A DNA stretch of 64,000 nucleotides from IMG/VR virus record IMGVR_UViG_3300043399_000272, positions 62,001-126,000 of that record; one strand, given 5' to 3'. The notes below the pieces were generated by a model. The model made no database searches. It saw only the letters and a program-made list of their open reading frames with translations, and was not told where the DNA came from. Shown here piece after piece: positions 3,183-61,500 of this stretch. Within the stretch, counting starts at the first letter, position 1. Each line of letters begins with the position of its first letter. A program made the position numbers and the translations under genes.

Positions 3183-3827
3183 ATGAAAAAAATTTTAATA
3201 GCCACGCCCTGCCTAGATCAAAAAGTTGACGCATACTTTGTACACAGCTTATGTGAATCCATCAAGTTAGGTTTAAAACACGACCTAGATATTAAATGTG
3301 TGTTTCTAGCTAATGAGAGTATTCTACCGATGGCTAGGAATGAACTTTTTGCATTAGCTTACAATGAAAAATATGACACAGTTGTGTTCATTGACGATGA
3401 CGAATATTGGAATCCACAGGTTCTTATAGACATAATTCAATCTGATAAGGATGTAATTTCAGTACCTGTCGTTAATAAATCTGACAACAAACCAACTACA
3501 TTTAACGTTTGGATAGATCCTCAAATTGTAATAGATACTGACGGATACGTAAAAATTAACAAATGTGGCACAGGATTTTTAAAACTTTCTCAAAAAGTAC
3601 TTAATGATCTTTGGGATTCTAATACAGAGTTAGTGTTTAGAAACAAGAAGTTAAAAAACATTTGCGAGTATACATACGTCAACGGCGACTTTGTTGGTGA
3701 AGACATTACGTTATCCAACAAAATTAAAGAACTAGGTTATGACATTTGGCTTAACCCAAATCATACAGTATCCCACATTGGTAATAAAATGTATGTCGGT
3801 GACTTTAAACAGCAACATAAACTATGA
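3183..3827 (+). CDS. glycosyltransferase, GT-A fold (GT2-like)
   Basis: KILIATP N-terminal strand, ILPMARN, DxD-like FIDDD, GTGFL, GEDI and VSHIG motifs. Confidence 0.75.
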   Translation: MKKILIATPCLDQKVDAYFVHSLCESIKLGLKHDLDIKCVFLANESILPMARNELFALAYNEKYDTVVFIDDDEYWNPQVLIDIIQSDKDVISVPVVNKSDNKPTTFNVWIDPQIVIDTDGYVKINKCGTGFLKLSQKVLNDLWDSNTELVFRNKKLKNICEYTYVNGDFVGEDITLSNKIKELGYDIWLNPNHTVSHIGNKMYVGDFKQQHKL

Positions 3828-5107
3828 TCGACATAATCATTCCAACATTATGGATGTCCAGTGACTTTGAAAAGTCGTTAGAAATGTATGTTGAGCAAGC
3901 ACTAGTTAACAAAGTCATTATCATAGACAATGCTATTAATAACAGACCTGACTTCAACGTATTGAAGAATCCTAAAATAGAGTTGATATCATATGGAAGA
4001 AACATCTACGTAAATCCTGCATGGAATGAAGGTGTTTTAAGAGCTACATCAAAAATCATTGGAATAATAAATGATGATATCAAAGTAGACAGTACTGTTT
4101 TTCAGTTAATCACAGATTTCAATTTGTCTCAGGGTGATATCATAGGTGTGAATCTTAGAGGATATCAAAACAATTACAAAATCGATGATTACATCGATAC
4201 CAAAGAAGAAATAGTAAAACTAAACTACAACGAGAATCAACCAATCGGCGGTCAAGCATGGGCGTTTGGTATTTGTATGTTTATGTTGCGTGAATCTTAT
4301 ACCCCTATACCTTCACTATATCAAGTATGGTACGGTGATGATTACTTAGCTCAACGTGCAAAAACTGTATATGCATTGAACTCTAACAAGATAAAAGGTA
4401 AGATTTCTGAAACGCTTACTAAGTTCAATGATCCAAATAGTGATGTGTCAAAAAGAATTGAATTAGACTCAAAAAACCTAATCAAATTCAATCATTTTAA
4501 GAACAGTAATAATTGGGACATTCCCCATAATATGATTAAGATGTATGCCCAACAGCGTAATCAAACACATAACTCTATATTTGAGATGGAATACCAAAAC
4601 GCAAGAAATACACCAAGTGACATTAATGAAAACGTTCACGAACTATATGAACTGGCTAAAGAATGTAAAACAGTAGTAGAAATGGGCGTTAGAACAGGTG
4701 TCAGTACAAGAGCATTCTTGAATACTGATGTTTCATTGATTTCATATGATATAGTTTTGAATTCAAACGTGCAAAGACTGTTTAATGAAGCTAAAAGAGT
4801 GGGCAAACAGGTTCAATACATAAAAGCCAATGTATTAGAGATTGAAATAGGTAACGTTGATTTGTTGTTTATTGACACATTGCACACTTACGATCAATTA
4901 AAACAAGAATTAAAACTACACGGGAACAAAGCCAATAAATATATTGCATTTCACGATACCCACACGTTTGGATTGCGGGATGAAGTCGGTAACGACAACA
5001 AAGGGCTTCTATCAGCTATTATAGAATTTTTGATGGAAAATTCTCATTGGACTTTCTACAAATACAAAACAAATAACAATGGATTAACTATCCTTAAAAG
5101 GACATAA
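3824..5107 (+). CDS. fusion of a GT2-like glycosyltransferase and a class I SAM methyltransferase (Methyltransf_24-like)
   Basis: N-terminal IIIPT, IIIDN, VNPAWN, INDD; C-terminal VVEMGVRTGVST and DLLFIDTLHTYDQL...IAFHDT. Confidence 0.75.
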   Translation: MIDIIIPTLWMSSDFEKSLEMYVEQALVNKVIIIDNAINNRPDFNVLKNPKIELISYGRNIYVNPAWNEGVLRATSKIIGIINDDIKVDSTVFQLITDFNLSQGDIIGVNLRGYQNNYKIDDYIDTKEEIVKLNYNENQPIGGQAWAFGICMFMLRESYTPIPSLYQVWYGDDYLAQRAKTVYALNSNKIKGKISETLTKFNDPNSDVSKRIELDSKNLIKFNHFKNSNNWDIPHNMIKMYAQQRNQTHNSIFEMEYQNARNTPSDINENVHELYELAKECKTVVEMGVRTGVSTRAFLNTDVSLISYDIVLNSNVQRLFNEAKRVGKQVQYIKANVLEIEIGNVDLLFIDTLHTYDQLKQELKLHGNKANKYIAFHDTHTFGLRDEVGNDNKGLLSAIIEFLMENSHWTFYKYKTNNNGLTILKRT

Positions 5108-5110
5108 TAA

Positions 5111-6010
5111 ATGAAATATAGTATTTTTCATCTACAAGGTGGAATTGGGAAACACATCGCAGCAACGGCTGTTGCCAAAGTTATTAAAAACAATCACCCT
5201 GATCGAAAACTCATAGTTGTATGTGCATATCCTGATATTTTTAACAACTTAGATTTTGTAGATAGAGTGTACCAGTTAGGTAATACCAGTTATTTTTACC
5301 AAAACTACGTACAAGACAAAGATTCTTTACTATTTCATCACGAGCCATATTACACTACAGACCATATTCACAAGAAACTACCGTTGATCCAAAACTGGTG
5401 TAAGATGTACGGTCTTACTTATAACGGTGAGAAACCTGTAATCAAGTTTAACAAACTTCAATATGATCTTTCTAAAAGATATTGGGTCAAAGGTAGTAAA
5501 CCTATCATGGTTATTCACACTAATGGTGGCATGATGACTACTGATGCGAAACCTTATGCATGGACTCGTGACATGCCGGAATCAATTGCACAAGAATTAG
5601 TTAATCACTACAAAGCAGATTACATGATCTATCAAGTTACAAAAATTAACTCACCTAAATTAAAAGGTGCTAATCATGTTTTTGCTACACAACAACAAGC
5701 ATTATCGTTGATGGAATTCTTCAGTTTAATGCTACACAGTGAAAAAAGAATTCTAATAGATTCTTCGCTTCAACACGCTGCTGCTGCATTAAATAAACCT
5801 TCAACTGTATTATGGAATGGCACAAGTCCAACTGTTTTTGGTTATGACTTACATGACAACATAACTACAAAGATTCCATACAACTTTAAACTTCCAGGAA
5901 GTTACTTGTTTGACTTTGATTTTAATGGTAATGAAATTGAATATCCATTTACTGAAGATCAAAATCTTTTTGATATAAACGAAATCATTGCGTCGGTAGA
6001 CAAACAATAA
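5111..6010 (+). CDS. glycosyltransferase, GT-B fold (GT9/heptosyltransferase-like)
   Basis: GGIGKHI, LIVV..YPDIF, ILIDSSLQHAAAAL.KPSTVLW, typical of GT9-like proteins. Confidence 0.75.
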   Translation: MKYSIFHLQGGIGKHIAATAVAKVIKNNHPDRKLIVVCAYPDIFNNLDFVDRVYQLGNTSYFYQNYVQDKDSLLFHHEPYYTTDHIHKKLPLIQNWCKMYGLTYNGEKPVIKFNKLQYDLSKRYWVKGSKPIMVIHTNGGMMTTDAKPYAWTRDMPESIAQELVNHYKADYMIYQVTKINSPKLKGANHVFATQQQALSLMEFFSLMLHSEKRILIDSSLQHAAAALNKPSTVLWNGTSPTVFGYDLHDNITTKIPYNFKLPGSYLFDFDFNGNEIEYPFTEDQNLFDINEIIASVDKQ

Positions 6011-6020
6011 GGAACAAATT

Positions 6021-6941
6021 ATGACTAAGAAAAAATATTATTTTATGGCTGGACTACCTAGAAGCGGTAGTACTATGCTATCAGCTATTTTAAATCAAAA
6101 CCCTAGATTTTATTCAGGACCTAGTTCTCCTGTAATACCTACAATGCTAGCGATAGAGAATTCTTTAAGCAATGATGAATTGTTCTTGGCTTATCCTAAA
6201 ATAGACTTTGGGAAGAATCTGATAGCTTCTGTTATGGATCATTACTACGCAGATGTAGATAAGCCAATTGTATTTGAGAAGAACCGTAGCTGGGTTAATA
6301 GAATGGAGTATATCAAAGGTTATTTTGGAATTGAACACCCTAAAGTATTGTACCCAGTACGAGATGTTTCTGAAATCTTAGCTTCATTTATATCTATGAT
6401 TAATAGAAACCCGCATATTATTAACGACCGCATCAACTTCATTGACCAGGCACTTGTTCAACAAGGCATACCAATCAATGATGTTACTCGCTGCCAAGCT
6501 ATTGCCGGTCCCGGTATCTTGGGTCAATCGTTTGATGGACTAAAGAAGGCGTTAGCTGAAGGATATAGAGCAAATATTCATTTCATTGAGTACAAAGACT
6601 TAGTTAATAATCCACGTGAAACAATGAAGAAAGTGTATGAATTCTTAGGTGAACCGGAATATCATCACGATTTTAAGAATCTAAAGAACTTGCACAGAGA
6701 AGACGATGTAAAAATCTATGGTTTTATTGACATGCACGAAGTCAGACCCGAAGTCAAATCAACAGCACTTTATCCAGAAGATGTATTACCTGCTAGTGTA
6801 TTAGACAGTGTACGTGGTGCAGAATTCTGGCGTGAAATAGATGATGTACCACTTAGTGATAGCACTGATACTGAAATTAAGCCACAACAGAGCTTTTTTG
6901 GACAAGTAATCAATGATGATAGTGATACTAAGCTAATCTAA
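6021..6941 (+). CDS. PAPS-dependent sulfotransferase family protein
   Basis: 5'-PSB loop GLPRSGSTML; 3'-PB motif VRDVSEILASF; IEYKDLV.NP. Confidence 0.85.
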   Translation: MTKKKYYFMAGLPRSGSTMLSAILNQNPRFYSGPSSPVIPTMLAIENSLSNDELFLAYPKIDFGKNLIASVMDHYYADVDKPIVFEKNRSWVNRMEYIKGYFGIEHPKVLYPVRDVSEILASFISMINRNPHIINDRINFIDQALVQQGIPINDVTRCQAIAGPGILGQSFDGLKKALAEGYRANIHFIEYKDLVNNPRETMKKVYEFLGEPEYHHDFKNLKNLHREDDVKIYGFIDMHEVRPEVKSTALYPEDVLPASVLDSVRGAEFWREIDDVPLSDSTDTEIKPQQSFFGQVINDDSDTKLI

Positions 6942-6943
6942 AC

Positions 6944-6975
6944 ATAAAGGTCTCTAAACGAGGCCTTTATTTTTT
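6944..6975 (+). terminator. intrinsic terminator
   Basis: ATAAAGGTCTC-TAAAC-GAGGCCTTTAT stem (one G-U pair) followed by a T run. Confidence 0.75.
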
Positions 6976-7041: not shown

Positions 7042-7266
7042 ATGGAACATCCAATTTTCAACATTCAACTTACACTTGATCAAGTAAACCTAATTCTAGC
7101 TACTGTAGGTAAATTACCATACGAGTCAATTGCCCCATTGATGAATTCTATTCAAGTTCAAGCTAGTACACAAATGCAGCAGTATAATGCTGCCACCGCA
7201 CAACAAGCAGAAGCAGAATCACAAGCATCACAAGCATCAGAAGATACAGGCAATATTATTCAATAA
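7042..7266 (+). CDS. small hypothetical protein
   Basis: 74 aa, AAAGG SD upstream, helical sequence. Confidence 0.7.
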   Translation: MEHPIFNIQLTLDQVNLILATVGKLPYESIAPLMNSIQVQASTQMQQYNAATAQQAEAESQASQASEDTGNIIQ

Positions 7267-7275
7267 GGAATAAAG

Positions 7276-8070
7276 ATGGTACAGCGTATACTAGTTATGG
7301 GTTTACCTGGTGCAGGCAAAACTTACCTGTCTCAACACATCTTAGAGCATTTACAGATCAACGGTAAAAAAGTAGGTTGGTTAAATGCGGATGATGTTCG
7401 CAAGAAGTATAACGACTGGGATTTCAGCAAGGAAGGACGTATCCGTCAAAGTTTACGCATGCGTGAACTTGCTGATTCTATGGTTGATATGGACTTTGTA
7501 ATCTGTGATTTTGTTGCACCATTGATTGAAATGCGTAACAACTTTAAAGCAGATTGGACTATTTGGGTCGACACCATAGATAAAGGTCGTTTTGAAGATA
7601 CAAACAAAGTTTTTATACCACCTGAAGTCTATGATTTCAGAATCACTGAACAAAAATCAGAATGGTGGGGTGAATTTATTGCTGCACATATGATTGATAA
7701 TCGTAGACGCCCTACTTTTGACTGGAAAAAAGAAACAGTTCAAATGTTAGGTCGTTGGCAACCATGGCACGAAGGGCATCGTGCATTGTTTGATCGTGCA
7801 ATTGCTAAAACTGGGCAAGTTGTGATTCAAATTCGTGACTGTCAAGGTTGGCAAGGTTCTAATCCTTTTGCGATTGAACAAGTCAAACACTATATCAAGC
7901 GTGATTTAGATCCTCTATATCAAGGTCAATATGAAATTCAAGTTGTTCCTAACATCGTAAACATTACATATGGGCGTGATGTTGGTTACAAGATTGAACA
8001 AGAAGTTTTTGATGATGCCATTCATTCTATTAGCGCAACGAAGATTCGTAAATCATTGGGCCTAAAGTGA
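7276..8070 (+). CDS. cysC: adenylylsulfate kinase-like domain fused to an HxGH nucleotidyltransferase domain
   Basis: P-loop GLPGAGKT, LNADDVR, DWDFSKEGRIRQ; C-terminal GRWQPWHEGH and ISATKIR. Confidence 0.75.
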   Translation: MVQRILVMGLPGAGKTYLSQHILEHLQINGKKVGWLNADDVRKKYNDWDFSKEGRIRQSLRMRELADSMVDMDFVICDFVAPLIEMRNNFKADWTIWVDTIDKGRFEDTNKVFIPPEVYDFRITEQKSEWWGEFIAAHMIDNRRRPTFDWKKETVQMLGRWQPWHEGHRALFDRAIAKTGQVVIQIRDCQGWQGSNPFAIEQVKHYIKRDLDPLYQGQYEIQVVPNIVNITYGRDVGYKIEQEVFDDAIHSISATKIRKSLGLK

Positions 8071-8291
8071 ATAAGTATCATGTTCGTTTCAATACTAAAC
8101 ACAACGGTAGTGATTTAGTTTGGAGAATTTTTGAAAATGGTGTAGAACATTTAGCAACAGATGTTCGCATCATTGGAGAAACTTACACCGAATGCACACA
8201 CGAACACGGTGAAACCAAATGGAACATAGCCTGCAATGGGCGTATAATTTGGGTTGACAAAGTTGCCGTTATAGTAACTGGGAAAGATTGA
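8067..8291 (+). CDS. small hypothetical protein
   Basis: 74 aa; overlaps both neighbours (translational coupling). Confidence 0.65.
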   Translation: MNKYHVRFNTKHNGSDLVWRIFENGVEHLATDVRIIGETYTECTHEHGETKWNIACNGRIIWVDKVAVIVTGKD

Positions 8292-8497
8292 TGAAAGAAA
8301 CATCGCTACGTAGCTTAGCGAAAACTATTAGTTGGCGCTTGACTGGTTCTAGCGCCACTTTTCTTATTAGTTACCTTATATCACACAATCTTAGTGTAGC
8401 AGGTACTATTGCAATAGTACAGTTGACCGCTAATACGATTCTATACTACATTCATGAAAGAGTATGGAATCGTATTAAGTGGGGTTCCTATAGATAG
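8291..8497 (+). CDS. DUF2061-like small membrane protein
   Basis: RSLAKTISWR and YYIHERVWNRIKWG with hydrophobic helices; TGATG overlap with the previous gene. Confidence 0.8.
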   Translation: MKETSLRSLAKTISWRLTGSSATFLISYLISHNLSVAGTIAIVQLTANTILYYIHERVWNRIKWGSYR

Positions 8498-8499
8498 TA

Positions 8500-9600
8500 T
8501 TACAAGCTGGGTAACGCCTCATAATCGATTGCATCACTCATAACACCAATAACATAGTTAGTAGATTCATTCTCTTGTAACGCAGTTTGCTTTTTACTAG
8601 TATCAGAATGTTTGTTAAACCAAGGAATAGGTGTTGTCTTTGGGTGAGGTTCTGTGTACTTAATACCGATTTCTTTCAATGCACTAACCGCAGTGTAATC
8701 AACAAAATCTTTAAGAACAGTCGCATTTAGACCAATAACTGGTCCTTTTTGAAACAAGTAATCTGCCCATTCTTTTTCTTCACGAATTACATCTAAGTAA
8801 ATTTTATAAACTTCGTCTTTAGTTTCTTCTGCAATTTTAGCAAAACGTGAGTCTTCTTTAACAACTTGGTTAATTAAGAAAGCAGTCCAACCTTTGTGTA
8901 ATAGTTCGTCTTGTAGAATCAAACTGATGATGTTGCCATTACCAATAAAGATTTTGTTTTCTACCATTGCTAGACTTGTCGCAAAAGAAACCATAAATCT
9001 AAATGCTTCTAATGCATAACTAGCGTGTAGTGCTAGATAGATTGCTTTAATGTGTTCATCTTCAGTAACAGTTTCACCTAGTTCTTTGCGACAGTTAATT
9101 TGGTGTAGTGCTTCATAGTAATTACCGACGCTAGAAGCCATACTAACAATTTCTTGTGTATCATGAATAGTGTTGAATACTTCTTTAGGAACATTGTAGA
9201 TGTTACGAATAATATGGCTGTAACTACGACTATGAATGTTTGTTTCAAAGAATGTCCAGTTATAAACTAGTGCTTCTAGTTCAGGTAAACTGATTACAGG
9301 TGTAAAAATCTGACTAGGACCTCTTCCCTGTAAACTATCTAGTGCAGTCTGACGCAATAAATTACTCGTAAAAATATGACGAACAGTTTCACTAGCATCT
9401 TTGAAATCACTAGCATCTTTAGTTAAACTGATTTCTTCCGGGACCCAAAAGAATCCACGTGCAGTTTGTTCAAAATCTGCAATCTTTTTATATTTTACTT
9501 CTTCGAATCGTTGAATAGTTACCGGGCCTTCTGGGTCTAGAAACATTTTGCGACTAAGATAATCTGTTTTTGTGTTTAAGTTATATTGTGCTTGGCTCAT
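8500..9600 (-). CDS. nrdB: ribonucleotide reductase class Ia beta subunit
   Basis: LDSLQGR, ETNIHSRSY, LEAFRF, DELLH iron ligands and radical Tyr; C-terminal NYVIG. Confidence 0.97.
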   Translation of the reverse strand: MSQAQYNLNTKTDYLSRKMFLDPEGPVTIQRFEEVKYKKIADFEQTARGFFWVPEEISLTKDASDFKDASETVRHIFTSNLLRQTALDSLQGRGPSQIFTPVISLPELEALVYNWTFFETNIHSRSYSHIIRNIYNVPKEVFNTIHDTQEIVSMASSVGNYYEALHQINCRKELGETVTEDEHIKAIYLALHASYALEAFRFMVSFATSLAMVENKIFIGNGNIISLILQDELLHKGWTAFLINQVVKEDSRFAKIAEETKDEVYKIYLDVIREEKEWADYLFQKGPVIGLNATVLKDFVDYTAVSALKEIGIKYTEPHPKTTPIPWFNKHSDTSKKQTALQENESTNYVIGVMSDAIDYEALPSL

Positions 9601-10194: not shown

Positions 10195-11400
10195 TTAAAA
10201 TTGATCTTCTTCAGTTGAATGTTTATTAGCAACTGTAGACTTTGCTCCAACTGCTTCACTAATTAGGTCGAAATATCCAACACCTACTTCACGTTGATGT
10301 TTGACTGTGGTAAAGCCACGGTCTTGTGCAGCAAACTCTCGTTGTTGCATTTCACTGTAACCTGCCATGCCTCTTGCCTTGTAAGCCTCTGCTAGTTCGA
10401 ATGTAGCTAAGTTTACACTATGAAAGCCTGCAAGTGTAATGAATTGGAACTTATAACCCAATTCTCCTAGTTCTCTTTGGAATGTTTCACATTCGTCTTC
10501 ACTCAAAAACTTACGCCAATTAAAACTAGGACTGCAATTATAGGCAAGCATTTGGTCAGGATACTGTGCATGGATGGCGTCAGCGAACTTTCTAGCTTGT
10601 GCGATATCAGGCGTTGAAGTTTCGAACCATAAGAGATCAGCGTAAGGGGCATAAGCAAGACCTCTGCTAATACAAGCATCAATACCGTTTTTAAATTTGT
10701 AAAAACCTTCTTCAGTTCTTTCATTGATTACAAAGTCCTTGTCTAATGGGTCGTGGTCACTAGTAATAAGTGTAGCTGCTTCGGCATCTGTTCGTGCCAT
10801 AATAACAGTATCAACACCTGCAACATCTGCTGCTAGTCGTGCAGCATTCAATGTACGAATCATTTGGCTTGTGGGTACTAGAACTTTACCACCCAAGTGA
10901 CCACATTTCTTTTCACTAGCTAATTGGTCTTCAAAGTGTACACCAGCGGCGCCTGCTTCAATCATTGCTGCCATTAGCTCATATGCATTCAATGCACCAC
11001 CGAACCCAGCTTCTGCATCTGCAACGATAGGCAAGAAATAGTCTGTTTCAACTTTGCCTTCGCTGTGTTCAATTTGGTCTGCACGACGGAAAGCGTTGTT
11101 AATACCTTTAACAACACGAGGTACAGAATCAACAGGATAGAGTGATTGATCCGGGTATGTTTGATTTGAGGTATTGTTTGCACCGGCAACTTGCCATCCT
11201 GACAAGTAAATTGCTTTTAAGCCAGCTTTAGCATGTTGTACTGCCATTTGTCCATTATATGCACCTAGTGTATTGATGTATGGTTCTGTTGCTAGCAATT
11301 CACGTAGTTTTGTCGCTCCGCGTTTCGCTAGTGTGTGTTCAATCTGTACGCTACCTTGTAGCTTTTTAACTGTGTCTTGTGTGTAGTTTCTCTTTTTCAT
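10195..11400 (-). CDS. aceA: isocitrate lyase
   Basis: [25 protein letters not shown], catalytic [27 protein letters not shown]. Confidence 0.97.
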
Positions 11401-52129: not shown

Positions 52130-52148
52130 AAACACGGTTTTTTCTTGT

Positions 52149-52156
52149 GATAAATA
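52149..52156 (+). promoter_or_regulatory. late promoter-like motif (GATAAATA)
   Basis: Preceded by AAAAAC-N3-GTTTTT; ATG 52177 downstream. Confidence 0.65.
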
Positions 52157-52176
52157 CATTATTGAGAGATAATAGT

Positions 52177-55100
52177 ATGGCCACAAGTTCAAGACAAACA
52201 AATATTTTTGGTGTAAACGATTGGAAAACAATCTACAAAAACTATAGTCAAGCTGACTTTCAGAGTTATGATTTTGAAACTATCAGAAAAACTTTTGTAG
52301 ATTACCTTCGAACCTACTATCCAGAAACGTTTAACGATTATATCGAGTCTAGCGAATATGTAGCACTCTTAGACGTAATTGCCTATATGGGGCAAGCGTT
52401 AGCGTTCCGCGGAGACTTAAACACCCGTGAAAATTTCATCGATACTGCTGAGCGTAGAGATTCTGTTATCAAGTTAGCTAATTTAGTTGGTTATACCCCT
52501 AAAAGAAATATTGCAGGCCAAGGATATTTGAAAGTATCTAGCATCTCTACAACTGAACAAATTAGAGACATTAACAATCTCAATTTAAGTAATCTTACTA
52601 TTCTCTGGAATGATCCTGCAAATCCAAATTGGCAACAGCAATTCAACACCATTATTAATGCAGCATTAATCGACTCTCAAAAATTCGGTAGTCCCGGCAA
52701 CACTAAGACAGTATTAGGTGTAAAGACTGACGAATATAGCATTGCTTTACCTGCAGGAGCTTCTCCTACAGTTCCATTTACTGCGACTGTTGACAATATT
52801 CCCATGTCATTTGAGGGAGTCAGTGTAACTACGGTTGACAGCGAAGATGTTCGTGAAGTAAGTCCAGGTATCGCTACTACGTTTAATTTATTATATAGAA
52901 ATGATAAGTTGGGGTTTGGAAGTCCAAATACAGGATTTTTTATGTACTTTAAACAAGGTACATTACAAACTTTTGATTTCTTACTAGAAGAACAAATATC
53001 AAATCAATCGGTCGCTATCAATATTGAAGGTATCAACAACACAGATACTTGGTTATATCAAACTAATAGCACAACCGGTGAGTTTATTGAATGGATAAAA
53101 GTTGACAGTGTTTATGCTAGCTCTAACTTACAAAGACTAACATCAAACAAAAAATTATTCAGCGTCAATTCAAGATCCAACGATCAAGTAAGTTATATTT
53201 TTGGTGACGGTGTTTTTAGTGAAATTCCTGTAGGAAGCTTCACATCGTATGTACGCTCTAGTAACGGGCTATCATATGTAATTGACCCTAGTGAATTCCA
53301 AAATCTAATAGTTAATCTAAACTATGTTAGCAGAAGAGGCAGAGTAGAAACATTAACTATGGCATTAACACTAGAATTACCTGTTTCAACAGCACAGGCA
53401 CGAGAAAGTTTAGCTGATATTAAACTTCGTGCTCCGCAAAGATATTACACACAAAACAGAATGGTCAACGGTGAAGACTATAATAACTTCCCGTTTACTT
53501 TGTATAGTTCTATTATAAAATCTAAAGCAATAAATCGCACTAGTATAGGAGTAAGTCGCAATTATGATTTACTTGATCCCAGCGGAAAGTATTCTAGTAC
53601 AAATGATTTTGCAGACGATGGTGCCTTATACCAAGAGTTGAATGATGGTTTCACGTTTTTTGTAGCAAATACGACAAATGATATTATTAACTTTTTAAGT
53701 GAATATCTACCAAACGTGTTGGGCGACAACCGCTCATATCAATACTATACTCAATTTTATTCTAGAAAATTAATAAATGACGCAAGCGGCGACGGCACAA
53801 TCACGTGGAATCAATCTACGAATGACGGTGGACAAAGTACTGGTTATTTTTATAACACATCAAACATTCCAGTAAACATTGGTATTTATGGTTCTAATAA
53901 CTTGAGATATGTAACAGTTGGTTCTATGATTTCGTTTACAGCGCCACCTGGGTATTACTTTGATCCAGTTGATAATCGTCTTATTGCAGGCTTACCTACA
54001 TCTAGTGATGTAACATCAATATGGACAACTGTGTCTGAAGTTATAGGCGATGGGTCTAATTCAGGTGAGGGCAATTTAAGTAACGACTCTGGTCCTGTTA
54101 TTTTAAACAATACTATACCTGACGGTGCAATTCTAACCGTAGTGATTCCTAGTTTTAGTAATACTCTAAGCAACGCATTAGTACAAGAATGCACAACTAA
54201 AATAAGACTAAATCAAAATTTCTCTTTGGTCTACAATAATTCTTTACTGATTAATCAAGAACGTTGGTCAACCAGTTCGTATTCTGATCTACAATATTTT
54301 GTAAAATTTCAAAGTGTAGGCATAGGCAGGTACTTAGTATCTTGGAGAAAGCTAACATATTACTTTGGTAGTGTAAGTGACGTTAGATTCTCATTTGATA
54401 GAGACAAAATCATTTATGATCCAGCATCCGGTAAGTTGATGCAAGATTATATTTCTGTATTGAAATCAAACTCACAACCTTCTAGTAATAGTCCATTGCC
54501 TAAAGACTTTAGGCTAAGTGTAGTTGGGCAGCTATTAGAATCTGATGGATATGTTGATGACTATTCTGTTGAGGTAAGTAATGGATACATAACCGATGTA
54601 GGAACTTTCAAAGATCCTGATTTCTTTTTAAATTTAGTTGGTTATGTAAACAATACTCGAAACACCAAATATTTTACTTTCTTTAGAAAATTAACAGACG
54701 CTAATTTATTGACTCGTTTCGAAATTGTTCCTACGAATGACATTGTGTATGGATACGGGACTCAAGCAGATATTGCGTTAGTAAAATACGAATATAGAGT
54801 AGGTCAGGTATTTTATGCAGTGCTTGAAAATAATTTCTATAGATCAGTTAATGATGCTACATCTGCAAATATAGTAAATTTAGAATTGTTAAATAACTAT
54901 GTAGCTAGAACAGGTAGACAAGGGTTCTATTTCCAGTACAAACATATTTCAAGCGAAACAACTCGTATTGATCCTGGAACTACAAACATTATTGATTTAT
55001 ATATTTTGACATCTGCATATTATACTCAATATACTAACTGGTTACGTGACGCAACCGGTACAGTTGCGGAACCTGCAAAACCAACTATTAATGAATTAAC

Positions 55101-55542
55101 GCAAACATATTATAAAGTCAATGAGTATAAAATGTTGAGCGATAGTTTAGTTGTCAATAGCGCAAAGTTCAAACCGTTATTTGGTGATAAAGCGCCACCT
55201 GAGCTACAAGCAACGATTAAGGTAATCAAATCAAGTACTACCACTGCTAGCGACAATGAAATACGTAGCGCAGTGTTAACAGAAATTAACAATTACTTTA
55301 GTATAGATAATTGGGATTTTGGTGACACGTTCTATTTTAGTGAATTAGCAGCATATCTTCACAATCAAATCGGAGATTTGATTAGCTCTGCTGTTTTAGT
55401 ACCCAACGATCCTCAACTATCTTTCGGTGATTTATACGAAATACATTCTACCCCTTATGAAATTTTTGCAAGTGCAGCACAAGGGTCAGACATTGTAGTA
55501 ATCGCAGCATTGACTCCCGCAGAGTTACAACCAAACAGTTAA
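52177..55542 (+). CDS. gp6: baseplate wedge protein (gp6-like), extended
   Basis: DFETIRKTFVDYLR, FNDY.ESSE, DTAERRDSV.KLA..VGY.P, QNRMV..EDY. Confidence 0.85.
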   Translation: MATSSRQTNIFGVNDWKTIYKNYSQADFQSYDFETIRKTFVDYLRTYYPETFNDYIESSEYVALLDVIAYMGQALAFRGDLNTRENFIDTAERRDSVIKLANLVGYTPKRNIAGQGYLKVSSISTTEQIRDINNLNLSNLTILWNDPANPNWQQQFNTIINAALIDSQKFGSPGNTKTVLGVKTDEYSIALPAGASPTVPFTATVDNIPMSFEGVSVTTVDSEDVREVSPGIATTFNLLYRNDKLGFGSPNTGFFMYFKQGTLQTFDFLLEEQISNQSVAINIEGINNTDTWLYQTNSTTGEFIEWIKVDSVYASSNLQRLTSNKKLFSVNSRSNDQVSYIFGDGVFSEIPVGSFTSYVRSSNGLSYVIDPSEFQNLIVNLNYVSRRGRVETLTMALTLELPVSTAQARESLADIKLRAPQRYYTQNRMVNGEDYNNFPFTLYSSIIKSKAINRTSIGVSRNYDLLDPSGKYSSTNDFADDGALYQELNDGFTFFVANTTNDIINFLSEYLPNVLGDNRSYQYYTQFYSRKLINDASGDGTITWNQSTNDGGQSTGYFYNTSNIPVNIGIYGSNNLRYVTVGSMISFTAPPGYYFDPVDNRLIAGLPTSSDVTSIWTTVSEVIGDGSNSGEGNLSNDSGPVILNNTIPDGAILTVVIPSFSNTLSNALVQECTTKIRLNQNFSLVYNNSLLINQERWSTSSYSDLQYFVKFQSVGIGRYLVSWRKLTYYFGSVSDVRFSFDRDKIIYDPASGKLMQDYISVLKSNSQPSSNSPLPKDFRLSVVGQLLESDGYVDDYSVEVSNGYITDVGTFKDPDFFLNLVGYVNNTRNTKYFTFFRKLTDANLLTRFEIVPTNDIVYGYGTQADIALVKYEYRVGQVFYAVLENNFYRSVNDATSANIVNLELLNNYVARTGRQGFYFQYKHISSETTRIDPGTTNIIDLYILTSAYYTQYTNWLRDATGTVAEPAKPTINELTQTYYKVNEYKMLSDSLVVNSAKFKPLFGDKAPPELQATIKVIKSSTTTASDNEIRSAVLTEINNYFSIDNWDFGDTFYFSELAAYLHNQIGDLISSAVLVPNDPQLSFGDLYEIHSTPYEIFASAAQGSDIVVIAALTPAELQPNS

Positions 55543-55558
55543 ATTATAGGCATAACAA

Positions 55559-58500
55559 ATGGTAACAAGAGTTCGAACAATTGATTTTCTTCCAGAAGTT
55601 TTTAAGACAAAATCAAACAGTCAATTTTTAAAGGGGTCGCTAGATCAACTAGTTCAGCAGCCTGACTTTAAAAGAATTCAAGGATACATAGGCAGTAAAT
55701 TCGGTTATGGAATTAATGCACGTGACAAATATCTAGTTGAACCTACGAAAGTGCGTTCAGATTATCAACTAGAACCTGCAGTAATATTTAAAAAGACCAA
55801 TACAAATACTGCTGTAGATTTACTAACTTATCCTGGATTGACAGATACTCTAACATTGCAGGGTTCAAATGTAACAAATGATTCAGAATTGTTTAATAAT
55901 GAATTTTATTCTTGGGATAGTTTTGTAAATCTAGATACATTGGTTAACTACGCACAGTATTATTGGTTACCAAACGGACCTGATGCAGTTCAAGTTACTA
56001 ATACTAGTTTCTTTGATAGATTAAGTCTTATAGTGACGCAAGGTTCTGCGGGATATGTAATTACTAGTCCTACGACAGTAATTGAAGGTGTCAACCCTAC
56101 TCTTACTTTAATTAGAGGTGGCACATATACATTTGCAGTTAATCAAACTGATGATTTTTGGATTCAATCAGAACCCGGCACGTCTGGCAAAAACATAACA
56201 CGATCTAATTTTAGTACAAGAGAAGTTTTAGGAGTTGAAAACAATGGCATCTCTGAAGGAACAATTACTTTTACAGTTCCAATGTCAACAGCTCAAGATA
56301 CTTGGTTGTTCCCTAATTCAATTGATATCGACTTAGCAACTACTTTAAAATGGGAAGAATTACAGGGCCTTCCTATAACCAGTAATACAAAAATCGACGG
56401 GTTAGCAGTTCAATCACTAATCGGTAAAACTGTTATATTTTACGGCACAACACCTGGTACATTAGGTGCATATAATGATTTCTACGGTGATAGTTATGAT
56501 GATGACGATTACTCAGAAACAACTTACACCGATATTACAAAACATTATTATACTATCACTGCTGCAGGTAACGTTGATTCACCTGTACTGAACCTAACAG
56601 AAACAGGTTTAATACCAGACAACACTTCTTTAAATATATTGTATGGCACAGAATACAGTGGTAGACAGTTTGTAAAAAACTCATATGCAGAAATAGTTTT
56701 AATACCTTACTTAACTGCACCATTAGATGTATTGTGGTATCAAAGTAGTAATAATCCTAACCTAGTAGGTAGAATTGAATTAGTTGATCCTATAACATTG
56801 CCTATTATTAATATCTTAGACATTTTAGGTAAAAAAACATACGTTAGCCCTAATAATGTAACATTTACTAATGGGCTAAAAGTCACATTTGTCGGTAACA
56901 TTGTTCCCGTAGAATATGCAACAGGTAGCTATTATGTTGAGGGAGTGGGATCTGCTATTGAGTTAATACCTACTGAATTCTTCGATAATCCTCCTATTAC
57001 AGAAGCTACAACACCGGACTACATCACTATTGCACGAAATAGTTTTGATAAAAATGAATGGTCACGTAGCAATCGTTGGTTCCATATCGATGTATTGAAT
57101 GCAACAATTGCATATAATGTTACTAGTCCTATTGCTTTAGAGGCTTTGGGTAATGTAAACAATCGTGCCAAGAGACCTATAATTGAATTTTATCCAAATT
57201 TAAAACTTTACAATTCTGGAACACTAAATCGTGAAAACGTGAAGTACATTAATTTTACTGTAACTGATGCATTTACGCAAGTAGCAGGAACTACAAGTTT
57301 TTATCCTGACGGTAGCACTGCACTAGTCAGTGGAGACACTATTATTTTTGCAGGTGACAATTCTGTTGATGTAAGAAATAAAATTTATGTAGCGCAAGTA
57401 TCAACAGTATCACCATCTACTCCTCCAGTGATCACCTTGAGTGAGTCACCTAACGGACAAGTTCAATTCGATCAACAAGTAACTGTTACGTCTGGTACAA
57501 CATACAAACAAAAATCATTTTATTTTGATGGGTTGAATTGGAAGCAAAGTCAAACAAAAGAAAGAAAAAATCAACCGCCTTTGTTTGATGTTTTCGACAA
57601 AAACAATAACAGTTTTGGAGATACTGAGTATTATCCTAGTACAACATTCAATGGATGTACACTGTTTGAGTATGCAACGGGATCAGGTGCAGATGATGCC
57701 GTTTTGGGATTCCCTATTAAGTACACATCAGGCAATCAGTTTGGTGACATTGTTTTCAATGCGTCACTCAATACACAAACTTTTGAATATTTAGATAACT
57801 TTACTGATACTACTTTAAATGTTGGTTCTGGTTTTGTTTTCAAATATGAAACTAGAGATAAGTTCACACGCAACATCGGATGGCAAACAACAGTTGATGA
57901 AAGTTTTCAATATCAAGTTTTCAACAAAGTTTCTACAGAGATTTCTAACTCACGATTTATTTGTGATGTTAAAGTAAATGATCCACAATCTACTGCTTGG
58001 CCAACTATTGTAGTTTATGCAAATAATTCTAGATTAGATTCATCTAAGTATACCGTTTCTACATCTACTAATAGTACAACTATAACTCTCGTGGATGACA
58101 TTGTTCTTGGATCACCTGTTGATATTTTAATTTATAGTGATCAAGTAAGCTCTGAGGGTTATTACCAAGTACCGTTTAACCTAGATCGCAACCCATTCAA
58201 TGGTGAAATCGAACAAATTCCTTTAGGTGACATTCGTGGTCATTACAAGAGTATTTTAAACAATGCTCCTGGTGTAACTGGTATAGCGTTTGGAGCCAAC
58301 AATTATAGAGATTTAGGTAATCTAATTCCTTATGGTACAAAAATAATTCAAAATAGTGCAAGCATCGTAAGTTCTGGTATGTTCTTACGAAACATATACA
58401 ATTTCTTTGATAGCTTGGCTTATAATTCTGTTCAATATACACAGTTTAAAACATTATTAGTAGACTTAGTTGTCACCAATGATTATACAAGTATGGATAG

Positions 58501-61500
58501 TACAGAGTTTGTACTAGACGACATTTTAGAAAAAGTAGCTAGTGTCAAATCAGATACAAATCCGTTTTTCTGGAGTGACATGATTCCTAATAAGGATTCA
58601 TTCTCTACAAAAAGTTACGTATTCAAATCATCAATTGATAATAGTAGATTTACACTTTCTCGTGTATATGATTTTACATCAGCAAACTACTACGGAGTGT
58701 TAGTTTACTTAACCCGCCGCGTGAATGGCCTCATGCAGCAGACACAGTTATTGAAGGATATAGATTATACTATTTCATCTACTGAAAATATTCTTACAGT
58801 CACAAAAGATTTACAATCCGGTGATTTAATTACGATTAAAGAATATGATCAAACGTATGGAAGCTATGTTCCAAATACCCCAACTAAATTAGGTTTATAT
58901 CCCAAGTATATTCCTGAAGTGATCTATGATGATTCTTATAGATATCCTACATACTTCATTCAAGGACACGATGGCTCCTTTAATAAATTATACGGTACTT
59001 ATGAAAATGGAGTACTAAATGATTTACGTGATCGTGTTTTGTTAGAGTTTGAGAAACGAGTATTCAACAACTTGAAAACTAGTAATGCGATTCCTTTAAC
59101 TTATGACGAAATCGTTCCTGGTCAATTTAGAAACGTTGGGTACACATTAGAGGAATACAACACAATGTATTCTAGTATGTTCTTAAATTGGGCTGGCGCT
59201 AACCGTATCGATTATCAAGAACATGACTATCAATCTACTAATCCATATACATTTAACTACAGGGGAGCTTCCTACAAATTCAACTCCAAAAAAATAGCTC
59301 AAGGTAGCTGGAGAGGAATATACTTGTGGCTATATGACACTATATATCCAGACACAAAACCATGGGAAATGTTAGGGTTCACTATTAAACCAGAATGGTG
59401 GGATACAAGATATGGTGTTGCTCCTTATACTAGTGGTAACACGTTCATGTGGCAAGACATTGAGAATGGATACGTTTGGAACAACGGTAACCCTTATATT
59501 AACACTCAAAGAACAAGACCGGGTTTATTGTCGATATTGCCAGTAGATAGTAACGGAGATTTAAAGTCACCGTTCGATTTTCTAATAGGAAGTTATGATG
59601 CTGATAACTTCGGTAATCCATGGATTTTGGGCGATGACGGTCCAGCCGAATACAGTTATTTAAAGAGTAGTACATGGCCATTTGATTTGATGCGCCTTGC
59701 TGCTTTAACTAATCCAGCTAAGTTTTTTGCTTTGGGAATCGATGTAGACAAATACAAATATGACAGTGAGTTCGGACAATATTTGTTTAATGGTCGATAC
59801 AGAGATTACTTGTCACTAACATCTATCTACGGTAACGGTGTCGCTGCACATAGTTACATGAATTGGTTCATTGATTACGTAAATCAGTATGAAGTAAATG
59901 GCACTGACTATGTTACTAATTTAATTGGAAACTTAGATGTTAGATTAACATATCGTCTAGCTGGATTTAGTGATAAAGATTTATTAGATTTCTTTGTTGA
60001 GAAGGGAAGTACATTAAGTAGCAATAATTCTCTATTGATTCCAGAAGATAATTACTCGATACTATTGTATGATAACCAGCCTACCGATACTATCATTTAT
60101 AGTTCTATAATAGTTCAAAAAACAACTAATGGCTATCGTGTATACGGCAACAGCCAAACAAAAACTTACTTCAAATCCTTTATTCCAAGCAGTAACGGGA
60201 TGACAACTGAGTTTACAGTAAACAATAATACAATTTATGTACCTAAGAATTACGTTGATAAAAGTGTTATTATTCCTTATGGTCACGAATTCAGTAATGT
60301 TACTGAGTTAGCTACTTTTATTAGAGGGTATGGTTTATACTTAGCGTCACAAGGACTTAAATTCACTGATATTGAAAACGGTATAGAATTATCATGGGAT
60401 CAAATGATCTATGAAACGTATTATTGGACATTAACAGGATGGGAAGTAGGAAGTACAATAAATGTCAACCCATCAGCTAGAAATATTATTATTGACAAAG
60501 AAAGTCACGTTGTTCAACCATTAACGATTGCAAAAGACAATTTTGTACTAAATCAAAACTTGTTACCAATCAACTTAAATGATCTTTATGTTTATCGTGA
60601 CGGTACTTACTTCAACGTTAAATCGTTGAATCAAGGTGATAGTCTATCATTTATCACTGCAAACACTAGTACCATTGAACACGTTGTCGTATTTGACAAT
60701 GAAACTATTTTCAATGACGTAATTTATAACCTTACCACCGGTCTAAGACAACAGCGTATGTATGTTAAAGGATCTAAAACCGCTGAATGGAATGGTACAG
60801 TTAATGCTGCAGGTTTTATCATTAACCAAGATAACATCCAAGAATGGCAACAAAATACAAAATACACTAAAGGTACTATTGTTAAATTCAAGAATGATTA
60901 CTATATCGCTAACGAAGTGGTAATTATCCCTAGTCCTACTTTTGATTATACTAAGTGGTTAAAAACTTCTTACGACATGATTCAAAAGGGCTTATTGCCT
61001 AATCCAAGTACACGTGCATATGAAAGCACATTGTACTATGACACAACTAACCCCAATTTAGAATCAGATGCTGATTTATTAGCATTTTCTTTGATTGGTT
61101 TTAGACCTAGACAATATTTTGCTCAAGCTAACCTAGACGATGCAACACAGGTAAACTTGTACAAGAATATGATTGAGGTTAAAGGAACTGTTAGCGGAGT
61201 AACGCAGCTTGAAGGAATTAATCTACAAGAAAATACATTAAATTATGATGTACACGAAAACTGGGCTATTAAAGTTACTGAGTTTGGCGGTATATTGAAT
61301 CAAAACTTCATAGAAATCACACTTGATGAAACTGCATTAACTGGCAACCCTAGTATTGCTTCTATAGTTGATAGAAATACAGTAGAAGGAACACAACAAG
61401 CTATACCATTATATAATATCAAAAATTATGGCAGACCAGTAACATCAGTAGATATCCTTCCTACTATCCCACAAGGACGTAATACTAGATTACCCTCAGC

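Follow-up and report, generated by a model that had tools for sequence, protein, structure and literature searches.

Whether a virus can activate sulfate with a single very small polypeptide is the question raised by a 264-residue protein encoded in a 260 kb jumbo-phage contig (IMG/VR record IMGVR_UViG_3300043399_000272), of which a 64,000-nucleotide stretch (the window) was analyzed. The first-pass annotation had proposed a miniature one-polypeptide PAPS synthase, in which an APS-kinase-like domain is fused to a small HxGH nucleotidyltransferase (NT) that may make APS, while allowing for an NMN or sugar-phosphate nucleotidyltransferase. No enzyme of this family has been assayed and the substrates and both activities are inferred, but several independent lines of comparative evidence support the proposal, making this protein a probable minimal PAPS synthase. 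One correction is needed: by sequence and fold the small domain is closest to archaeal and NadM-type NMNATs and is better read as a separate recruitment of the HxGH fold for sulfate adenylylation than as a shrunken Sat.

The reading frame is real. It starts at an ATG with an AAGGA Shine-Dalgarno sequence 5 nt upstream, and the motifs named in the first-pass annotation are all present, including the P-loop GLPGAGKT (residues 9-16) (Table 1). The two-domain architecture is not a chance feature, as it recurs in thousands of metagenomic proteins (8000 scored candidates, all at E <= 0.001; 2169 representatives at E <= 1e-3 in a further search). A megablast search of the region against phage records gave no match. 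A search with the C-terminal domain alone returned fragments of the same family and no distant stand-alone relatives, but it revealed split-gene forms; single divergent members were used as queries instead. The sulfotransferase gene upstream had already been noted in the first-pass annotation, but the 334 nt gap between the two genes also holds a strong terminator-like hairpin and a short ORF, so the two genes are probably not co-transcribed.

Table 1. Features of the candidate sulfate-activation locus (positions are those of the window).
Position	Strand	Feature	Supporting observations
3183..6010	+	Glycan-modification genes: a GT2-like gene, a GT2-plus-methyltransferase gene and a GT9-like gene; probably build the substrate for sulfation	Weak Pfam and PHROG hits; same cluster in the closest relative (locus L011)
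6021..6941	+	Sulfotransferase (306 aa), likely consumer of PAPS	Sulfotransfer_3 E 7e-16; Sulfotransfer_1 E 1.4e-14; phrog_27463
6944..6970	+	Terminator-like hairpin with a T-run, separating the sulfotransferase from the transcription unit of the fusion gene	11 bp stem
7042..7266	+	74-aa ORF just upstream of the fusion gene, poorly conserved	No family hit; homologues in only 3 of 80 related loci
7276..8070	+	Two-domain gene (264 aa), proposed minimal PAPS synthase	phrog_10255 over its full length, E 3e-47; AF2 model pLDDT 94.3
7276..7695	+	APS-kinase-like domain (residues 1-140), short lid; P-loop K15/T16	PF01583 over residues 5-92, 43.6 bits (gathering score 21.1)
7717..8067	+	Minimal HxGH nucleotidyltransferase domain (residues 148-264), proposed sulfate adenylyltransferase; GRWQPWHEGH at 159-168 (WHEGH at 164-168), YGRDVGY at 232-238, ISATKIR at 252-258	Invariant G159, R160, Q162, H165, H168, G233, R234, G237 and R258; AF2 model pLDDT 93.3
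7969..7989	+	YGRDVGY loop, specific to this family	G, R and G invariant, D in 42 of 49 members
8067..8291	+	74-aa ORF between the fusion gene and the DUF2061 gene, overlapping both	Homologues in 10 of 80 related loci; also in loci L011 and L012
8288..8497	+	DUF2061 small membrane protein (69 aa)	PF09834, E 1.3e-20

The N-terminal domain is an APS-kinase homologue. A family profile retrieved APS kinases from the PDB at E 3e-17 to 1e-13, against about 1e-5 for other kinases, and the AF2 model of the full protein matches APS kinases and the kinase domains of PAPS synthases. The APS contacts of Mycobacterium tuberculosis CysC, D480, R483, F492 and R497 (PMC4373884), map to D39, R42, F50 and R55, which comprise the catalytic Asp, the Arg pair that clamps the phosphosulfate and the Phe that stacks on the adenine, and which are present in 46-49 of 49 family members. 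Nonetheless, the domain departs from canonical enzymes in several respects. It scores only 33-41 bits against NCBIfam equivalog cut-offs of 127-139, and its lid lacks about 20 of about 30 residues, including the segment carrying the canonical Arg and Lys that contact ATP, although an aromatic residue at position 106 (48 of 49 members) may stand in for the lid Phe, the second Phe that stacks on the adenine. Furthermore, the first Asp of the DGDN motif is Asn here (N37) and in 31 of 49 members, with Asp in 15, and the D87A substitution at this position abolishes human APS-kinase activity (PMC8528679).

The C-terminal domain of about 115 residues shares with archaeal NMNAT (PDB profile E 4e-12) and NadM (E 1e-10) the GR(F/W)QP(F/W)HxGH signature, the following helix-strand elements, the NPF motif and the S-x-T-x-x-R motif. 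These alignments cover only its first two thirds, ending at profile position 80, and the NCBIfam NMNAT scores of 22-25 bits lie far below the cut-offs of 127-181. The segment where NMNATs, at about 170 residues, bind the nicotinamide moiety is replaced by PNI...YGRDVGY with its invariant Arg, and a further near-invariant Arg (R187) is present. Structural comparison of the predicted fold gave VIA Z scores of 10.1-9.2 for PPAT, NMNAT, NadM and NadR and 8.7 for Thermus thermophilus ATP sulfurylase, the latter aligning over 112 of 117 residues. Sat is thus a structural neighbor that ranks below PPAT and the NMNATs, and it is not a sequence match: there is no Pfam hit, and no Sat chain appeared in the PDB profile search even at E <= 10. 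The YGRDVGY motif resembles the GRD loop of Sat (PMC3779200), but the resemblance rests on the motif only and may be coincidence.

The association of this NT domain with APS is supported by cellular genomes. The same domain is fused to a canonical full-length CysC (PF01583, 212-220 bits) in real bacterial genes, namely one protein (P0347) found on 4 contigs and two loci (L097 and L098) in ordinary chromosomal context. Of the genomes carrying this NT-CysC fusion, the single-cell genome is 1.2 Mb and incomplete, while the MAG has CysD, CysNC and CysH but carries the fusion on a 5.5 kb contig sharing synteny with an alphaproteobacterium, so its binning is doubtful. The domain order is permutable, the two halves can be separate genes, and all 11 alphaproteobacterial genomes with the NT domain have an APS-kinase-type domain fused or adjacent to it. 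In one order of small alphaproteobacteria, the NT domain occurs in 10 of 11 species genomes, and a cysH-DUF2061-kinase-NT operon is present in 9 of 9 loci not cut by a contig end. In one genome (G325), and syntenically in another (G193), this operon is preceded by sulfite reductase and a siroheme-type methyltransferase. Notably, none of the 11 genomes of this order was found to have CysD and only 1 has Sat. Five further genomes without Sat or CysD carry the kinase-NT pair, and four of them have sulfotransferases, including one located 12 nt downstream of the pair (G157). As most of these cellular genomes are incomplete MAGs or SAGs, the absence of Sat or CysD is not proven, and among the carriers G193 has a Sat and three others (G246, G404 and G250) have CysD. 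Class-wide, CysD was found in 3 of 11 NT carriers against 218 of 401 background genomes, a trend in the expected direction that is not significant alone. The protein encoded in the window is 59% (NT) and 45% (kinase) identical to the operon-encoded pair.

The phage context points in the same direction. Sulfotransferase-like ORFs lie within 10 kb of the gene in 32 of 80 close and 4 of 80 divergent relatives, falling into 17 lineages that are less than 60% identical to each other; all are on the same strand as the fusion gene, and several directly abut it. Canonical cysC in cellular genomes has the same two neighbors, sulfotransferases and DUF2061. Profile searches of the window's genome found no Sat, no CysD or CysH and no other APS kinase, whereas a second sulfotransferase was found about 12 kb upstream, outside the window. 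On the other hand, many carriers have no recognizable PAPS consumer, including the Sano-like and DLP_6 phages and two relatives that are 94-97% complete (G001 and G002), which have no clear sulfotransferase and no PAPS reductase. An SSF transporter found upstream of the gene in clade-B phages returned only a generic sodium:solute symporter or pantothenate-permease label, with no link to sulfate.

Taken together, these observations are best explained by a compact bifunctional enzyme in which the NT domain transfers AMP from ATP to sulfate, giving APS and pyrophosphate, and the short-lid kinase then phosphorylates the 3'-OH of APS to give PAPS. In this phage, PAPS most likely feeds the two sulfotransferases, both of which belong to a glycan-modification cluster, while in relatives without sulfotransferases the product presumably enters host sulfur metabolism. 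The nearest functional counterpart is the metazoan bifunctional PAPS synthase (PAPSS1/2), with the same domain order and the same proposed net reaction; in human PAPSS1 (1x6v), the kinase matches at about residues 55-143 and the sulfurylase domain at about 407-597. PAPSS, however, has about 620 residues, and its sulfurylase domain is a Sat-type domain with a PUA-like module, an RNP loop and a GRDHAG loop. Compared with Sat-type homo-oligomeric ATP sulfurylase (PF01747), the NT domain belongs to the same nucleotidyltransferase superfamily and has, in the same order, a histidine motif after strand 1 and a G-R-D-containing loop that may correspond to those of Sat, but it has GRWQP where Sat has QTRNP, lacks a PUA-like N-terminal domain and is roughly half the size of the catalytic domain of about 200 residues. 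In CysNC and the Sat-CysC fusions of bacteria and fungi, sulfurylase and APS kinase are likewise joined in one protein or operon, even in organisms that reduce APS directly, but those sulfurylase modules are CysD/CysN or Sat.

An NMN or sugar-phosphate nucleotidyltransferase remains possible but fits the context much less well. The NT domain could be a trimmed NMN adenylyltransferase that supports phage NAD(P) supply alongside an APS kinase or another adenosine-nucleotide 3'-kinase, as its closest sequence and fold relatives, weak NCBIfam hits and the annotation of some family members by JGI as NMNAT or nicotinamide riboside kinase would suggest; in Sano-like phages, moreover, the start of the gene overlaps the end of a COG3236/NADAR-type gene. 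This appears unlikely given the replaced acceptor-binding segment, the constant company of an APS-kinase-type domain, the placement in a cysI-cysH operon in genomes that largely lack a known sulfurylase and the absence of NADAR from the window's genome. Equally unlikely is a protein that makes APS while its kinase domain is catalytically weak or purely regulatory or APS-binding, like the APS-kinase-like allosteric domain of fungal ATP sulfurylase. N37 and the truncated lid support this view, and the operon-encoded CysH carries the CC...CxxC signature of APS reductases, so the kinase step is not needed for assimilation there. Conservation of the P-loop Lys and Thr and of the APS contacts nevertheless argues that catalysis is maintained, sulfotransferases need PAPS, and in G157 and the window's genome the only APS-kinase-type hits other than this domain are two weak ones in G157, at about 22 bits.

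Least likely is an HldE-like activation of a sugar, polyol or other phosphorylated precursor for the neighboring glycosyltransferases, with only an indirect link to sulfotransferases. The glycosyltransferase and methyltransferase cluster lies beside the gene in the window, and the most frequent neighbor in related phages is a stand-alone CTP_transf_like gene, often with a small cupin, the two being fused in L011. However, the kinase keeps the residues that clamp the phosphosulfate and sandwich the adenine of APS, the cellular contexts are sulfur-specific and not glycan-related, and fusion to a canonical CysC has no rationale under this model. A CoA-synthase-like reading (PPAT plus dephospho-CoA kinase) and a link to riboflavin or 7-deazaguanine pathways were suggested by neighbors in Sano-like phages and in one further locus (L093), but neither association recurs across the family.

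Only two kinds of ATP sulfurylase are recognized, Sat and CysDN, and no description of this NT domain was found in the literature. It is somewhat more likely than not that the domain represents a third class, recruited independently of both, and that with the short-lid kinase and DUF2061 it forms a minimal sulfate-activation module that is the sole sulfurylase of some streamlined bacteria and has been spread widely by phages as an auxiliary metabolic gene. If so, the protein would be the smallest known sulfate-activating enzyme, and lineages now called unable to activate sulfate because they lack sat and cysDN, including small planktonic bacteria, may not be. A very abundant auxiliary gene of phages from lakes and other waters, until now counted at most as "CysC" or "kinase", would likewise be recast as a complete sulfate-activation unit, which bears on the idea that viruses reprogram sulfur metabolism in sulfur-poor lakes (bioRxiv 10.1101/655167). 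A 264-residue PAPS synthase would also be an attractive part for regenerating PAPS in enzymatic sulfation.

DUF2061 is a third, recurrent component of the module. It is found downstream of the fusion gene in 30 related viral loci and, beyond the cysH-DUF2061-kinase-NT operon, is fused to the kinase half in two proteins (P0271 and P0339) and to the NT half in another (P0321), as well as fused or adjacent to canonical cysC in three loci (L134, L162 and L105).

The open reading frame carrying the motifs described in the first-pass annotation (the P-loop GLPGAGKT, WHEGH, and ISATKIR) is open and encodes 264 residues, with an AAGGA ribosome-binding site located 5 nt upstream of its ATG. The upstream gene is a sulfotransferase (Pfam Sulfotransfer_3 and Sulfotransfer_1). 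Notably, the 334-nt spacer between the two genes holds a strong terminator-like hairpin with a T-run and a poorly conserved 74-aa ORF. The gene is therefore more likely co-transcribed with the genes downstream of it, a 74-aa ORF and DUF2061, both with overlapping start and stop codons, than with the sulfotransferase. The window is part of a 260 kb IMG/VR viral contig that is about 74% complete, representing a jumbo phage with ribonucleotide reductase and glycan-modification genes nearby.

Coordinates of the gene, its neighbors, and notable genes at related loci (locations without a prefix are in the window; L numbers denote loci of related genes)
Location	Strand	Feature
6021-6941		Sulfotransferase
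6944-6970		Terminator-like hairpin with a T-run
7276-8070	+	Kinase-nucleotidyltransferase fusion (264 aa)
8288-8497		DUF2061 small membrane protein
8500-9600	-	Ribonucleotide reductase small subunit, directly after DUF2061
10195-11400	-	401-aa ORF
52147-55542	+	1131-aa ORF preceding the very large ORF, which is also preceded by a 980-aa ORF
55559-64000	+	Very large ORF (more than 2814 aa), running off the end of the window
L209:5427-5867, L055:5458-5820, L011:6973-7743		CTP_transf_like protein (146 aa) and the 120-aa cupin that often accompanies it; fused in L011 (256 aa)
L242:6565-8004		Sodium:solute symporter family transporter (479 aa)
L093:4653-9145		Separate, overlapping kinase and nucleotidyltransferase genes in what looks like a 7-deazaguanine-type cluster
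L001:5565-6008, L003:4565-5008		COG3236/NADAR-type protein in Sano/Salvo-like siphophages
L011:8783-9427, L012:878-1522		GIY-YIG/NUMOD3-type homing-endonuclease-like gene

In the kinase half, Pfam APS_kinase matches residues 5-92 above its gathering score. A profile constructed from 47 family N-terminal domains retrieved APS kinases from PDB at E 3e-17 to 1e-13, while other P-loop kinases appeared only near 1e-5. The AF2 model has a pLDDT of 94.3, and Foldseek matched it to APS kinases and the kinase domains of PAPS synthases. The APS contacts of Mycobacterium tuberculosis CysC are known from its structure (PMC4373884): D480 of the LDGD motif contacts the ribose, R483 and R497 bind the phosphosulfate, and F492 together with the lid residue F576 sandwiches the adenine. 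Through the HMMER alignments, D480, R483, R497, and F492 map to D39, R42, R55, and F50, which are invariant or nearly so in a 49-member alignment spanning 32-89% identity. Two features depart from canonical enzymes. The first Asp of DGDN is Asn here and in 31 of 49 members, and D87A abolishes the human enzyme (PMC8528679). In addition, about 20 lid residues are missing, including the positions of the canonical lid Arg and Lys, although an aromatic residue at position 106 (48 of 49 members) may replace the lid Phe.

No Pfam family passes threshold for the nucleotidyltransferase (NT) half. A profile of 51 C-terminal domains identified archaeal NMNAT (1f9a, E 4e-12) and NadM (2qjt, E 1e-10), but only over profile positions 7-80, and no Sat was found at E <= 10. 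The domain folded alone has a pLDDT of 93.3, and its core superposes on NadM, PPAT, and archaeal NMNAT at about 2 A over 75-80 residues. A structural search independent of Foldseek aligned nearly the whole domain, with PPAT, NMNAT, NadM, and NadR scoring Z 10.1-9.2, T. thermophilus ATP sulfurylase with APS bound (1v47) scoring Z 8.7 over 112 residues, and other Sat domains scoring Z 5.6-6.5. The predicted fold therefore places the domain in the HxGH superfamily, which includes Sat, but cannot assign its acceptor. The family-specific features are an invariant YGRDVGY loop (G233, R234, G237) in the place of the NMNAT nicotinamide-binding segment and a near-invariant R187. At the level of motifs alone, the order of a His motif followed by a G-R-D loop and then I-S-x-T-x-x-R parallels the RNP/HxxH and GRD loops that define Sat (PMC3779200), a resemblance that may be coincidence.

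The fusion is extremely common in metagenomes, with a search of representatives finding 2169 proteins at E <= 1e-3 and 127 at E <= 1e-30. Among cultured phages, it occurs in the Sano/Salvo-like Xylella, Xanthomonas, and Stenotrophomonas siphophages and in DLP_6, where it is annotated as "kinase" or hypothetical protein. Classification of the 150 best representatives with domain HMMs built for this purpose yielded 72 kinase-NT, 50 kinase only, 16 NT only, 3 NT-kinase, 2 kinase-DUF2061, and 2 DUF2061-NT architectures. The protein P0402 joins the mini-NT to a fragment of chorismate synthase and is probably an assembly or gene-calling chimera. At two loci, L093 and L290, the halves are separate, overlapping genes. 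In L093, a 189 kb contig, they are embedded between GTP cyclohydrolase I, a PTPS/QueD-like gene, a phosphoribosyltransferase, an HhH-GPD glycosylase, and a radical-SAM-like gene.

The exact neighborhood of the window is kept only in the closest relatives (loci L011, L013, and L017), and in many 84%-identical orthologues the neighbors are unrelated genes. Even so, an HMM search identified sulfotransferase-like ORFs within the flanks of 32 of 80 close relatives and 4 of 80 divergent relatives. These fall into 17 lineages that are less than 60% identical to each other; all lie on the strand of the kinase-NT gene, 0-9 kb away, and several directly abut it on either side. Sulfotransferases are the third most frequent neighbor family. 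The window's own genome has two sulfotransferases, both within about 13 kb of the gene in 260 kb, and has no Sat, no CysD or CysH, and no second APS kinase. There are counter-examples: the near-complete relatives G001 and G002, as well as Sano, Bacata, and DLP_6, have no clear sulfotransferase and no PAPS reductase, and cyanophages that do carry sulfotransferases lack this gene. In the Sano/Salvo-like siphophages, the end of the COG3236/NADAR-type gene overlaps the start of the kinase-NT gene, and a MazG-like pyrophosphatase and a gene annotated as cysteine dioxygenase lie nearby.

Other neighbors also recur in related phages. The most frequent (38 loci) is the stand-alone CTP_transf_like protein, which, like its accompanying cupin, is absent from the window. 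The sodium:solute symporter family transporter lies directly upstream of the gene in 22 divergent relatives (clade-B viral loci, among them L242), and the Protein Atlas returned only generic SSF or pantothenate-permease labels for it. In the closest relatives, including L011 and L012, the homing-endonuclease-like gene is inserted between the kinase-NT gene and the 74-aa ORF, and the ribonucleotide reductase large subunit there appears to be split by an inserted ORF.

Links to genuine sulfate activation were found in cells. The protein P0347 joins the mini-NT to a canonical full-length CysC (212 bits) and is encoded identically on four contigs. It occurs full-length in ordinary chromosomal context in an OCS116-cluster single-cell genome and in a second contig with the same synteny. 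The 5.5 kb contig L098, binned in a gammaproteobacterial MAG (G006), shares its synteny with an alphaproteobacterial single-cell genome (L097) and is probably mis-binned. Among 80 canonical cysC loci from cellular genomes, DUF2061 is fused or adjacent to cysC in three (L134, L162, and L105), and sulfotransferase-like genes lie directly downstream of cysC in about eight Thermoplasmata. The two signature neighbors of the phage gene are thus also neighbors of true cysC. DUF2061, an uncharacterized small membrane protein, is in addition fused to either half of this family (P0271, P0339, and P0321), and may anchor the enzyme to the membrane, deliver sulfate, or act in regulation.

A scan of 401 alphaproteobacterial genomes with the mini-NT profile identified 11 strong carriers, in every one of which an APS-kinase-type domain is fused or adjacent; seven of the 11 have neither Sat nor CysD. 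In two of these genomes, G325 and G193, the kinase and NT genes close a same-strand gene string that runs from a siroheme-type methyltransferase through sulfite reductase (NF010029, 698 bits), CysH, and DUF2061 to the kinase and then the NT. That whole order comprises 11 species genomes (0.6-1.2 Mb assemblies; the two sequenced loci have about 26% GC), with the NT present in 10 of them and the cysH-DUF2061-kinase-NT arrangement present in all 9 loci not cut by a contig end. Each genome has exactly one strong CysH hit, only one has Sat, and none has CysD, which the same PF01507 search would detect, as it did in G006, although most of the cellular genomes are incomplete MAGs or SAGs. The CysH carries the CC...CxxC cysteines, which probably mark Fe-S APS reductases; if so, the one indispensable activity missing from the pathway is sulfate adenylylation. 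Of five further carriers without Sat or CysD, none has a CysH-type reductase, but four have sulfotransferases, one of which lies 12 nt downstream of the fused kinase-NT gene on a 2.06 Mb contig in genome G157 and another about 9 kb away in genome G151. The window's protein is 59% (NT) and 45% (kinase) identical to the operon-encoded pair, so the inference carries over.

The simplest reading is that the NT domain is a sulfate adenylyltransferase and the kinase domain an APS kinase, which would make this a minimal PAPS synthase with the same domain order as metazoan PAPSS. In human 1x6v, the kinase matches at about residues 55-143 and the sulfurylase domain at about 407-597. The module appears in two settings, reductive assimilation and sulfation; both need APS, and the NT domain is the only candidate common to both. 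In this phage, PAPS would feed the phage's sulfotransferases acting on a phage-directed glycan, while in relatives without sulfotransferases it would feed host pathways. This fits the observation that dominant freshwater hosts lack complete sulfate assimilation (bioRxiv 10.1101/655167; PMC6018831). Everything here is computational, the kinase deviates from the canonical active site, and many phage carriers have no recognizable PAPS consumer. We accordingly regard the bifunctional PAPS-synthase reading as probable rather than established, with somewhat more confidence that the NT domain makes APS than that the kinase is fully active. Freshwater viral "CysC family" genes have been counted before (bioRxiv 10.1101/655167), but we found no paper that notices the NT domain or proposes a third kind of ATP sulfurylase.

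Alternatively, the protein could be an NMNAT, an APS-only enzyme with a regulatory kinase domain, or a sugar-activating kinase plus nucleotidyltransferase. None of these explains the fusion to a canonical CysC together with the cysH operon in genomes without a known sulfurylase.

Many alphaproteobacterial genomes also give CysD-model hits that cover only positions 1-205 at about 215-235 bits, on ORFs of roughly 265-430 aa and below the curated cut-off, which may represent a distinct family related to CysD. Within the window, the 401-aa ORF lies in the place matching that of an isocitrate-lyase/PEP-mutase family protein of about 402 aa in L011, where it is the gene beyond the ribonucleotide reductase small subunit.
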